Positions 22,426 to 63,209 of a stretch of DNA of 64,000 bases are shown here, in pieces. Position 1 is the first letter of the stretch. Every line of letters begins with the position of its first letter. The stretch lies in sequence record MW735835.1. One strand, given 5' to 3'. Made by a program: the position numbers and the translations under genes. The notes beneath the pieces are model-generated. The model was not told where the DNA came from and did no database searches. It saw only the letters and a program-made list of their open reading frames with translations.

Positions 22426-22911
22426 ATGGATCGAACTCCCCTGGCGCTTTGGGCTAAGCACCTCATAAGGGCCGCCATTGACTACTTCAATGAACGCTCG
22501 ACCAAAGCCTGTCTTATCGTTGACAACACCATTCTCAAGGATGGGGTCCTGGCCGCAATGGCTCAGGAGAACAACAGCAGTGACTTCATTGTCTGTGTCG
22601 CACCGGGTTTCACCACCCAGTTAGATTTCGGAGACGCTGATCTGACCATCAGTGTGAAGTTCCACGATGCTGCCCATTCAATGGTCATCCCGTACCACGC
22701 GATTCGTGCAGTGATTGCTGCCGACAGCGGTGGTGTGCTGACCGAGAACGGCCACATTAACATCATCAGCGTCCCGCCGGTTGTGTACCCGCCTGCGTCC
22801 CGCTACCGTAATGAAGAAGAACTGGACAAGATTGCTCAGCAAGTGGTAGAGGAAGAAGTCCATGCCCAGCCCACGCAGTCTGAGCTTCAGCTAGTTGTAC
22901 GGAGATCATGA
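22426..22911 (+). CDS. divergent SspB-fold protein
   Basis: HLIRAAIDY...LIVDNT aligns to SspB YLLRAFYEW...LVVDVT; VCVAP..TQLDFGDADLTISVKF...MVIPYHAIRAVIAADSG aligns to LNIAP..GNLELANDEVRFNARF...VSVPLAAVLAIYARENG. Confidence 0.6.
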   Translation: MDRTPLALWAKHLIRAAIDYFNERSTKACLIVDNTILKDGVLAAMAQENNSSDFIVCVAPGFTTQLDFGDADLTISVKFHDAAHSMVIPYHAIRAVIAADSGGVLTENGHINIISVPPVVYPPASRYRNEEELDKIAQQVVEEEVHAQPTQSELQLVVRRS

Positions 22912-47156: not shown

Positions 47157-47513
47157 GTGAGCAAATCTGAGGAACCGATTGTCGTCATCAAATGGCTACA
47201 CTCGTCCTCGGGCCGCAGTAAACGCAGCGAGATCGTCAACCAAGGATGCTTCGTGCTCGAGCACGAAGCTACCGGGCGCTTCTATCTGGGCCAGAGCGAC
47301 AACGTCAGCAAAGACGTCGATAAACAACTTTCCCAACTGGCAAACGGCAAGCACCCGAACAAGATCCTGAACGTCCTCTACGAGAAGGACAACGAGATCC
47401 GGGTGTTCGAATATCCACAGAAGGCAAAGAAGAAACGCGTAACCCTCATGCGTGAGCTGATTGAGAAGGCCGGCTACCTTTGCCTAAATCCAAGAGATGT
47501 CCGCAATGTATAA
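47157..47513 (+). CDS. degenerate GIY-YIG-like protein
   Basis: GCFVLEH..TGRFYLGQS.NV...L..GKHPNK.L..LY; lacks the first Tyr and the Arg. Confidence 0.6.
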   Translation: MSKSEEPIVVIKWLHSSSGRSKRSEIVNQGCFVLEHEATGRFYLGQSDNVSKDVDKQLSQLANGKHPNKILNVLYEKDNEIRVFEYPQKAKKKRVTLMRELIEKAGYLCLNPRDVRNV

Positions 47514-48012
47514 AGACCTGAAGCTTCCCAAGCTGGTGCAGCAGATTCTCCTGGTCACCCGTGACCACATTCTTTCTTCGTCCGCCAAGTGCCACATGTT
47601 GGTGCTGGCGACTCCCAAGTTCCTCAAGGACAATCCGCACCTGAAGCCGAGCGCGTTCGAACACGCGATCTTCGGCCCGGTCGTGGTCCTGAACATCACC
47701 CCGCAAGCGATCGGCCCGATCACCTTGGGTGATGACTTCATCAGCTTCGAAGCCCGCTACAGTGGTGCCCTGCTGACCAACTTCGTGACCATGGGTGACA
47801 TCGTTGGCTTGTATTCGCCAGAAGAAGGCTCGGTCATGATCGACGTCGGTGTGGTCAACCTCATCGGTGATACCGGCATGGGTGACGGCAGTGTCGGCAT
47901 GATTGCTGCCCGTCCGCTGAACAGCTACGAGCCGGCAGAATCCGAAGCCCAGGTCCAAACCCAACCCGTTCAACCGCCGCGTGAGCGCCCTAGCCTGAAG
48001 GTAGTCAAATGA
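47497..48012 (+). CDS. sspB: SspB-like ClpXP adaptor with intact ClpX-binding tail
   Basis: VVLNITPQAIGPITLGDDFISFEARYSG...IVGLYSPEEG; C-terminus PPRERPSLKVVK. Confidence 0.85.
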   Translation: MSAMYKDLKLPKLVQQILLVTRDHILSSSAKCHMLVLATPKFLKDNPHLKPSAFEHAIFGPVVVLNITPQAIGPITLGDDFISFEARYSGALLTNFVTMGDIVGLYSPEEGSVMIDVGVVNLIGDTGMGDGSVGMIAARPLNSYEPAESEAQVQTQPVQPPRERPSLKVVK

Positions 48013-48431
48013 GTCAGATAGCTCTGTTCGATGACGGCCGTAAAGAACCTGTCGAGTACGCTTTCGGCGTCCCGGTGCAGGTCTTAATCCCGGACTCCCA
48101 TGGCCTGACCCAGGCTGAGGTCGATGACCTGATGCCGTCGGCTGCCCTGCCGATCTTCACCACCTATCCGAAGCGCAACCTGCGTCCGGGTCTGGCGGAT
48201 TTCTATGCCAAGCTCAAGCCGGCTAAGATCGGCTACCTGCGGGCCTCAGGCTTCGTAAAAGGAAATGAAGGCTGGGTATTACATGGGAGAATCGAGTATG
48301 GGGACAATGTGCGCAGTGAACTGCTCACCGATCCCCGCCTGGTGGTTCTCAGTGTCGACATCGAACGTGGCGATCCTTCTAAGGGGCGAAAGGCTATTGG
48401 CCTGGACCGGATGATGGTAAGCCCGAAGTAA
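48009..48431 (+). CDS. hypothetical protein
   Basis: 140 aa, ATGA overlap. Confidence 0.7.
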   Translation: MSQIALFDDGRKEPVEYAFGVPVQVLIPDSHGLTQAEVDDLMPSAALPIFTTYPKRNLRPGLADFYAKLKPAKIGYLRASGFVKGNEGWVLHGRIEYGDNVRSELLTDPRLVVLSVDIERGDPSKGRKAIGLDRMMVSPK

Positions 48432-61033: not shown

Positions 61034-62263
61034 ATGCCTGCACAAGTCAACATCAACAACTACGACAACCACCTCGTGATCACCGCCACCGACCAGAGCA
61101 ATCTGGTGGATCATGTCCCGGCGATGGTCTACAAGGCAGTGTTGCGTCCGTACGGCATCGTGCTGATCAAGGACCGTCCGACCTTCACCCTTCCGCAACT
61201 GCGCTTCGGTCGCCATAAGCGTTTCTTCACCCAGATCAGTAACAGCTATGACCGCGATGGCCGTGGCACTGGCGTGCTGTTGGCTGGTGAAAAGGGCACC
61301 GGTAAGTCGCTGATGGCGGAAGAACTGGGCGCCTGGATGATCAAGCAGGACCTGCCGGTGATCATGGTCAGCGAACCCATGTCGGCTGAAGACCTGTCGG
61401 TCGTCATTAAGGCTGTCGGGCCGTGCATGGTGCTCTTCGACGAGTTCGGTAAGGTGTATCACGATGTCCACGAGCGTGAACGCCTGCTGACCCTGTTCTC
61501 GGACACCTCGTTCGTCGGTGTGATGTTCGTCATCACGGGCAACGCTGCCAGTGAGTTCTCCGAGTTCCTGGTTCACCGCCCTCAGCGGTTCCTCTACTGC
61601 ATCAACTACCACAGTGGTGTGGACGAGGAGACCATGGAAGACATCCTTACCACCATGCAGGTCAAGCCGGAGATGCATGAGCTGTTCCGCGAGTACCGGG
61701 TCGATAGCCGTACCCTGAACATCGACTCGCTCATGTGCGTCGTGCGTCAGTCGGCGGACTGCAAGACCCCGGAGGAGCTTGTAGAGCGTTGCGAGATCCT
61801 CAACGTACCGGAACTTCCTAAGAAGCGCTGGTACATCAAGGATGTCGTTCAGCTCAGCACGGACACCGAGGAAGTCAAGCCGTTTGGCTGGGACTTCAAC
61901 GCGAACCGTGTAGGCTTCATCGGCCTGATCGAAGGACGTGTGATGGAAGCCCGCCATATTCGCGATCCAGAGGGCCGTCGTACGTCTGTCGAGTACCAAG
62001 TCTCTGCTGACAACAGCGACGTCAAGATCGTCGTAGAAGGCATGCGCACTTTCGAGGTAACCCTCACTTACGGTTACATGCGCCCATGCTTTGATGCTGT
62101 GAAGCATGGTGAGCCGCACCCTGAGGCGGTTCTTACCAGAGAAAACAACCTCATGGTCCCTTCACGGGCAGGTGGTTTTGGTACGTTCCATTCCGAGGCC
62201 ACCGTGGATAGCGGCTCGCCGCGTGAACCGTGGCGAGCCGTTCAACCGGCAGGCCGTCATTAA
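61034..62263 (+). CDS. AAA+ ATPase
   Basis: Walker A GEKGTGKS, Walker B MVLFDEF, sensor-1 ITGN, Arg-finger HRPQRF. Confidence 0.9.
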   Translation: MPAQVNINNYDNHLVITATDQSNLVDHVPAMVYKAVLRPYGIVLIKDRPTFTLPQLRFGRHKRFFTQISNSYDRDGRGTGVLLAGEKGTGKSLMAEELGAWMIKQDLPVIMVSEPMSAEDLSVVIKAVGPCMVLFDEFGKVYHDVHERERLLTLFSDTSFVGVMFVITGNAASEFSEFLVHRPQRFLYCINYHSGVDEETMEDILTTMQVKPEMHELFREYRVDSRTLNIDSLMCVVRQSADCKTPEELVERCEILNVPELPKKRWYIKDVVQLSTDTEEVKPFGWDFNANRVGFIGLIEGRVMEARHIRDPEGRRTSVEYQVSADNSDVKIVVEGMRTFEVTLTYGYMRPCFDAVKHGEPHPEAVLTRENNLMVPSRAGGFGTFHSEATVDSGSPREPWRAVQPAGRH

Positions 62264-62678: not shown

Positions 62679-63209
62679 ATGACCACGATCGTTTATCATC
62701 AAGGCGCCATCTACGCGGATCAGGTCCACGTACGTGCTGGCACACCCTGCACCAGCCATCTGGCTGTTAAAATCTTCACCTCTGCCGATAAGCAGTTCGC
62801 CTACGGCGTGAGCGGTCGAGCCATTGCCCCGAAGGAGCGCGAATCTCTCGAACAGATTCTTCGCAAGGGCCTAGAGAAGCTTCTTGTAGCGAACATGGGC
62901 GATTCTATCATGACTCCCATGATCTTCTCTGAAGAGGAAATAGAACGTCTCAGCGATTTCGGTGGTTGGGTCATCATGACCAAGACCAGGGCATTCATTT
63001 GGCTGTCGCGGATGATCCGCGAGGCCACAGGAGCAACCATGGGCGCCGGTACCGGTTGCTGGCTGGTGTGCGGAATGATTTACGGCGGCATGAAGCCGGA
63101 GAAAGCCATTCTTAACACAGGTGACTTGGATTGCTGCACTGGTGGCGGTGTGAACAAGATCAGTGCTAAATCCCTGAAACCCTTCGTCATCAAAGGAGAG
63201 TCCAAATGA
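62679..63209 (+). CDS. Ntn-hydrolase (HslV/proteasome beta-like) peptidase
   Basis: M-TTIVY..GAIYADQ, KIF, GAGTG, D..TGG. Confidence 0.65.
   Translation: MTTIVYHQGAIYADQVHVRAGTPCTSHLAVKIFTSADKQFAYGVSGRAIAPKERESLEQILRKGLEKLLVANMGDSIMTPMIFSEEEIERLSDFGGWVIMTKTRAFIWLSRMIREATGATMGAGTGCWLVCGMIYGGMKPEKAILNTGDLDCCTGGGVNKISAKSLKPFVIKGESK

Follow-up and report, generated by a model that had tools for sequence, protein, structure and literature searches.

We analysed a window of 64,000 nucleotides that corresponds to bases 186001-250000 of pPa_SNUABM_DT01 (MW735835.1; hereafter DT01), a 265.5-kb phiKZ-related jumbo phage with P. aeruginosa as its host (PMC8541153). The gene under study, PA10_00271, lies within a long co-directional gene array, its 5' end overlapping a GIY-YIG gene and its stop codon overlapping the next open reading frame (ORF):

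47157-47513, plus strand: GIY-YIG endonuclease gene (PHROG 13862, E = 3.5e-27), overlapping the start of the adaptor gene
47497..48012, plus strand: SspB-like adaptor gene PA10_00271 (QTH80469.1); the longest ORF encodes 171 aa, or 168 aa when read from 47506
48009..48431, plus strand: downstream ORF of 140 aa, whose start overlaps the adaptor stop (ATGA)

An earlier note on this DNA had described the ORF at 47497-48012 from two peptides; both are present on the plus strand, as the core motif (residues 62-90) and the 12-residue C-terminus. The start of PA10_00271 more likely lies at 47506, three codons after 47497. GenBank and the metagenomic gene call P0001 both use this position, its Shine-Dalgarno spacing is the better one (an AAGAG box precedes 47506 by 9 nt and 47497 by 0 nt), and in the alignment the relatives described below start at the equivalent position. 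P0001 is 168 aa long and 99% identical to the DT01 adaptor, and a near-identical copy of the adaptor with the same synteny was found in three metagenome samples. In the syntenic relative L009, an unrelated 82-aa ORF stands where DT01 has the GIY-YIG endonuclease, suggesting that the latter is a free-standing homing endonuclease inserted in the lineage of DT01. The third codon positions of the adaptor gene are G+C-rich (GC3 = 0.75). An opposite-strand ORF of 175 aa (47446-47973, minus strand) inside the adaptor gene was treated as a shadow ORF. Scans for sigma-70 promoters and for terminators stayed at chance level, the sigma-70 model being uninformative for a phage that has its own RNA polymerases, and the 64-kb window contains no tmRNA or tRNA genes.

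The DT01 protein is a homologue of the SspB family and not an equivalog, since its Pfam and NCBIfam scores lie under the curated cut-offs. Pfam SspB (PF04386) matched with E = 3.9e-4 and 20.9 bits, under the gathering score of 27 bits. Nine SspB equivalog models of NCBIfam also matched, the best by E value being NF008769 (E = 2e-11), and all nine fell far under their cut-offs (best score 44.1 bits versus a cut-off of 135). PHROG 8945 ('stringent starvation protein SspB-like') aligned to residues 10-171 over profile positions 8-149 of 149 (E = 5.1e-9). Sequence matches in the PDB were SspB chains of E. coli and H. influenzae (E = 2e-6 to 9e-5), and the alignment to E. coli chain 8et3_Y (E = 2e-6) includes the C-terminal tail.

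Comparison of profiles and structures gave the same answer. Aligned with hhalign, the profile of the diverged subgroup to which DT01 belongs matched the canonical SspB profile with 99.7% probability (E = 1.7e-26), the 136 aligned columns running from the N-terminal helix through to the final residue. The AF2 model has a pLDDT >90 for residues about 10-115, and the best 13 Foldseek matches to it in the PDB were all SspB (probability 1.00, E = 2e-6 to 2e-4, TM(target) 0.52-0.64). The E. coli and H. influenzae proteins (PDB 8et3, 1ox9, 1ou8 and 1twb) are the best PDB matches by both structure and sequence, with 22-27% identity and a TM of about 0.6 normalised to the target. Profile-profile comparison, AF2 and Foldseek thus show an SspB fold, and the SspB-like core that had been read from the letters is borne out, by Pfam, PHROG, NCBIfam, PDB and hhalign matches, well beyond chance.

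To place the protein among its relatives, we searched 1.84 billion representative proteins exhaustively with HMMER, obtaining only 25 matches at E <= 0.001. Some of these are canonical bacterial SspBs; the others form a diverged subgroup of eleven sequences, with identities to DT01 of 25-44%. Less sensitive word-index searches returned one near-identical match with the protein query and four matches with the subgroup profile. Members of the subgroup sit on contigs that reach 182, 226, 236 and 266 kb, in jumbo-phage-like contexts where genes for DHFR, thymidylate synthase and NAD ligase lie close by, and the contig of the relative L009 is syntenic with the window. A tblastn search of 50,697 cultured-phage records with the DT01 protein found no other cultured phage with a subgroup member. 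The DT01 adaptor belongs to a small, sparse SspB lineage on jumbo-phage-sized genomes whose other known members all come from metagenomic contigs.

Alignments and AF2 models divide the protein into the following segments:

47524..47580, plus strand: N-terminal helix, residues 10-28 (AF2 pLDDT about 90-95), diverged in sequence
47614..47652, plus strand: subgroup-specific insertion of ~8 residues, found in the alignments and modelled by AF2 as two short helices (residues 40-52)
47656..47847, plus strand: conserved SspB beta-core, residues 54-117 (alignments, AF2, Foldseek)
47854..47910, plus strand: hydrophobic segment, residues 120-138, replacing the acidic linker of bacterial SspBs; predicted beta-hairpin
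47911..47985, plus strand: flexible linker, residues 139-163, with low pLDDT and no secondary structure in both AF2 models
47986..48009, plus strand: XB-type C-terminal octapeptide, residues 164-171, predicted to bind ClpX from its sequence identity to Pseudomonas SspB tails

The C-terminal octapeptide is the segment closest to the host protein. The last eight residues of DT01 are identical to the SspB tail in all 39 Pseudomonas species of a set that comprised species other than P. aeruginosa, and in 8 of 41 other gammaproteobacteria; P. aeruginosa itself was compared via the residue numbers of PMC13251409. The Pseudomonas tail given in the earlier note is therefore correct. In the 135-aa SspB of P. 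aeruginosa, R128-K135 mediate ClpX binding, and their replacement by alanine raises the Kd from 27 to 179 nM (PMC13251409). The DT01 tail also aligns residue for residue with the C-terminus of E. coli SspB. Within the subgroup, L167, V169, V170 and K171 are among the twelve near-invariant columns, and the tail stands at the exact C-terminus in 10 of the 11 members. At the third codon positions of the tail, DT01 and Pseudomonas match at a mean of 2.9 of 8, versus 4.6 of 8 among Pseudomonas genes. Because these synonymous positions differ, the identity is kept at the level of the protein, and we reject the idea that the tail was recently acquired from the DNA of the host. Judged by its sequence, the DT01 protein probably docks on host ClpX through this tail.

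The conservation of the tail also bears on whether it might serve another partner, or whether the gene might be a drifting remnant with no ClpX-related role. Such a reading could draw on the scores under the curated family thresholds and on the fact that the literature searched yielded no functional data on any phage SspB-like protein. However, the ORF is intact, AF2 predicts its fold with confidence, a near-identical syntenic copy recurs in three metagenome samples, and no element of the subgroup is better conserved than the tail, which stands at the exact C-terminus in all members but one. We regard this explanation as very improbable.

The folded domain, by contrast with the tail, has drifted far. 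We defined conserved canonical columns as those with one residue in at least 85% of 80 canonical SspBs, which gave 51 columns. DT01 retains 22 of these and loses 29. In the N-helix region 1 of 12 columns survives, whereas the beta-core has kept about half and the terminal peptide all 5 of its 5. The N-terminal helix is thus not recognisably conserved at the sequence level, as the earlier note had stated. A helix is nonetheless predicted by AF2 at residues 10-28 and is spanned by the hhalign profile alignment. In canonical SspB, the N-terminal helix is the helix of the dimer interface and groove. Strong conservation in canonical SspB is limited to the dimer interface and the ssrA groove (Ghanbarpour et al., PMC9963277), so that the columns lost by DT01 fall on functional surfaces. 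On this evidence the helix/groove region of DT01 is remodelled, the groove being assessed by column conservation.

Other segments differ as well. The insertion directly precedes a conserved strand, in the segment that bears the engineered ssrA-crosslink cysteine of H. influenzae SspB (PDB 1twb; position read from the 1twb chain sequence against those of 1zsz and 1ou8). Within the beta-core that follows, L65, N66, A71, F84, R87 and G90 are near-invariant across the diverged subgroup. The hydrophobic segment at residues 120-138 is common to most subgroup members. An AF2 model built from the subgroup only placed strands at residues 120-125 and 133-138 (pLDDT about 67-75), whereas a model built from a mixed alignment gave residues 120-138 a pLDDT <50 and no hairpin; an additional beta-hairpin may occupy the site of the acidic linker. 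The linker itself has a D+E fraction of 0.14 in DT01 versus 0.38 in Pseudomonas SspBs, and a hydrophobic fraction of 0.27 versus 0.13. Overall, DT01 has the SspB fold and a flexible C-terminal region in common with P. aeruginosa SspB, but differs from it in a replaced N-helix sequence, the ~8-residue insertion, a less acidic linker and an additional length of 33-36 residues. Its identity to Pseudomonas SspBs is about 31-41%, over partial stretches only.

These differences weigh against an orthodox SspB, which would bind ssrA-tagged proteins and/or MucA and strengthen quality control of the host type while translation is heavy during infection. The deposited annotation implies such a role, and the central canonical motif and the overall architecture are retained. 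However, 11 of the 12 conserved N-helix columns are changed among the 29 of 51 lost overall, the insertion adjoins the tag-crosslink position, and the scores lie far under the NCBIfam equivalog cut-offs. Moreover, the window has no tmRNA gene, and the host has its own SspB. We therefore consider an orthodox role distinctly unlikely.

We next consider the neighbouring genes, as the earlier note had placed the adaptor at the centre of a candidate phage system for rewiring proteolysis. This proposal was not supported: we found no conserved partner, no linked protease and no annotated phage Clp gene. The downstream ORF (48009-48431) shares 35% identity with its counterpart in the closest relative, L009 (E = 5e-27). 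It has no family matches and no similarity to the ORFs that follow the adaptor in two other relatives (L007 and L011). Its conservation in the closest relative only rules out a conserved downstream partner gene. Two further genes with possible proteolytic functions lie about 13-15 kb from the adaptor, with a 105-aa ORF between them:

61034-62263, plus strand: AAA ATPase (PHROG 2376; matches to generic AAA families only)
62679-63209, plus strand: HslV-family peptidase (PHROG 1040, E = 1e-14)

The peptidase sequence opens with Met-Thr-Thr, which would suit an N-terminal-threonine peptidase. The ATPase shows neither a ClpX nor an HslU signature, has no PDB match and lacks cysteines in its first ~130 residues. 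In ClpX, the zinc-ribbon domain is the receiver of SspB tails; given the absence of cysteines, the phage ATPase lacks anything like it. No Clp components are annotated in the DT01 genome. On these grounds we reject a phage-encoded tail receptor, leaving host ClpX as the sole plausible receptor for the tail. Erwinia phage RAY also has an HslUV-family protein together with an SspB-like gene.

SspB profiles matched one other ORF in the window (E = 1e-7 to 1e-6):

22426..22911, plus strand: SspB-fold paralogue PA10_00227, annotated as hypothetical, 161 aa, a weaker SspB profile match

Aligned with canonical SspB by hhalign, PA10_00227 gave a probability of 87% (E = 3.7e-6), the alignment being confined to the folded domain. 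It has no recognisable docking tail, its C-terminus being at best a degenerate docking peptide, and no relatives were found among cultured phages. A BFVD match of 161 aa, A0A8A6C929, is probably PA10_00227 itself.

The novelty that the earlier note implied was overstated. GenBank already annotates PA10_00271 as a ClpXP specificity-enhancing factor, although the main text of the genome paper (PMC8541153) does not discuss it, and reports of SspB homologues in phages date back to 2017 (PMC5587285; PMC10299810). The first to be noted was that of pf16, for which docking led to the suggestion of competitive inhibition of the RseA pathway (PMC5587285). RAY gp039, described as an SspB-like adaptor for ClpXP, was shown to reside in the cytoplasm, and a contribution to overcoming the defences of the host was put forward as speculation (PMC10299810). 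We found no report of a functional test of any phage SspB-like protein in the literature searched.

A tblastn search with canonical SspB identified 81 phage records with SspB-like genes (50 Pseudomonas, 18 Erwinia, the others Ralstonia and Vibrio), counts that are slightly inflated by ordinary bacterial sspB genes on AGRM01000002.1, a 691-kb Salmonella chromosome contig, and OR851148.1, a 2.7-kb 'Salmonella phage' fragment. The 50 Pseudomonas records include phiKZ gp232 and its relatives. A viral structure library adds SspB-like proteins from Noxifer, PhiPA3, 201phi2-1, Phabio, Psa21, PhiEaH1 and Aeromonas phiA8-29.

These proteins (pf16 gp18, RAY gp039, phiKZ gp232, Ralstonia FLC1-1B gp93 and Noxifer SspB; PHROG 8945) are phage-encoded like that of DT01, mostly by jumbo phages, and share with it an SspB domain and a C-terminal peptide of the L-x-V-[VI]-K type. 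BLASTP similarity to DT01 is weak (E = 3e-10 for pf16 gp18, 1e-6 for phiKZ gp232 and 5e-5 for RAY gp039). Among the five phage tails examined, only that of DT01 is identical to the tail of its host genus; those of pf16 gp18, RAY gp039, FLC1-1B gp93 and phiKZ gp232 are similar to it but non-identical. Exact identity is not required for the role of the family, since phiKZ gp232 has a non-identical tail and the same host. The 302-aa gp232 (L012:1486-2394) has an N-terminal SspB domain, ~170 extra residues, a tail-like motif and then four residues more, an architecture unlike that of either the DT01 adaptor or bacterial SspB. Its extra region gives a weak FUR-like Pfam match (E = 0.008). The DT01 adaptor is a new, unusually diverged member of this known and widespread jumbo-phage SspB-like class.

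A host-identical tail on a diverged domain could act in more than one way. As a pure decoy, the protein would deliver nothing; its tail, carried on a probable dimer, would saturate the ClpX N-domains and block host SspB and other adaptors that depend on them, for example damping SspB-dependent MucA degradation and AlgU stress signalling. The identity of the tail to that of the host genus, the loss of most N-helix/groove columns and the shorter, non-acidic linker all fit such a decoy. Competitive inhibition has already been proposed for pf16 gp18 (PMC5587285), and AlgU-MucA is delivered by host SspB (PMC13251409). Yet any scaffold with a tail would suffice for a decoy, and the fold and L65, N66, A71, F84, R87 and G90 are conserved. 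The persistence of fold and beta-core motif in a subgroup of 25-44% identity suggests that the folded domain still binds something. We consider a pure decoy unlikely, though a credible contender.

We favour, with modest confidence, a cargo-delivering adaptor with non-standard cargo that also competes with host SspB for ClpX. Retention of the beta-core motif across the subgroup argues for a binding domain that is still under selection, as opposed to a mere scaffold, and delivery is preferred over a pure decoy because a decoy would not need the fold and beta-core that are conserved. A non-standard cargo is favoured by the remodelled helix/groove region and by the insertion beside the tag-binding site. 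Once the protein is expressed in the cytoplasm of the infected cell, its tail would dock on the ClpX N-terminal domain of the host in the manner of the host SspB tail, tethering the cargo of the folded domain to ClpXP; we infer that the protein dimerises. The cargo would most likely not be host-standard, that is, ssrA-tagged proteins or MucA-AlgU, and would more likely be another peptide signal, borne by a protein of the phage or of the host. Occupied ClpX N-domains would put the protein in competition with host SspB, and host ClpXP would, overall, shift its adaptor-dependent choice of substrates during infection.

The earlier note's reading of a phage adaptor stands in its structural part, namely SspB family membership (AF2, Foldseek, hhalign), a diverged cargo-binding domain (conserved columns) and a host-identical docking tail (tail counts); the retargeting to new substrates and the competition with host SspB that it proposed are candidate activities of such a protein. 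A more specific version is a targeted-degradation device, in which an SspB matched to the host in its tail and remodelled for cargo would bring specific host proteins, such as defence or stress-response factors, to host ClpXP. This we rate as a long shot; the paralogue PA10_00227 might modulate such a device, for example via mixed dimers.

The present result is an informative but incremental refinement of an annotation. SspB-like genes are common in phiKZ-like and other jumbo phages, a group of interest for phage therapy and for its nucleus-like replication compartment. Among them, DT01 provides a natural and clear-cut case of a docking tail kept identical to its host counterpart on a cargo domain that has drifted far. 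A constant tail on a drifted cargo domain is the pattern expected if a phage redirects host ClpXP, and a solved structure could reveal what such phage adaptors recognise.
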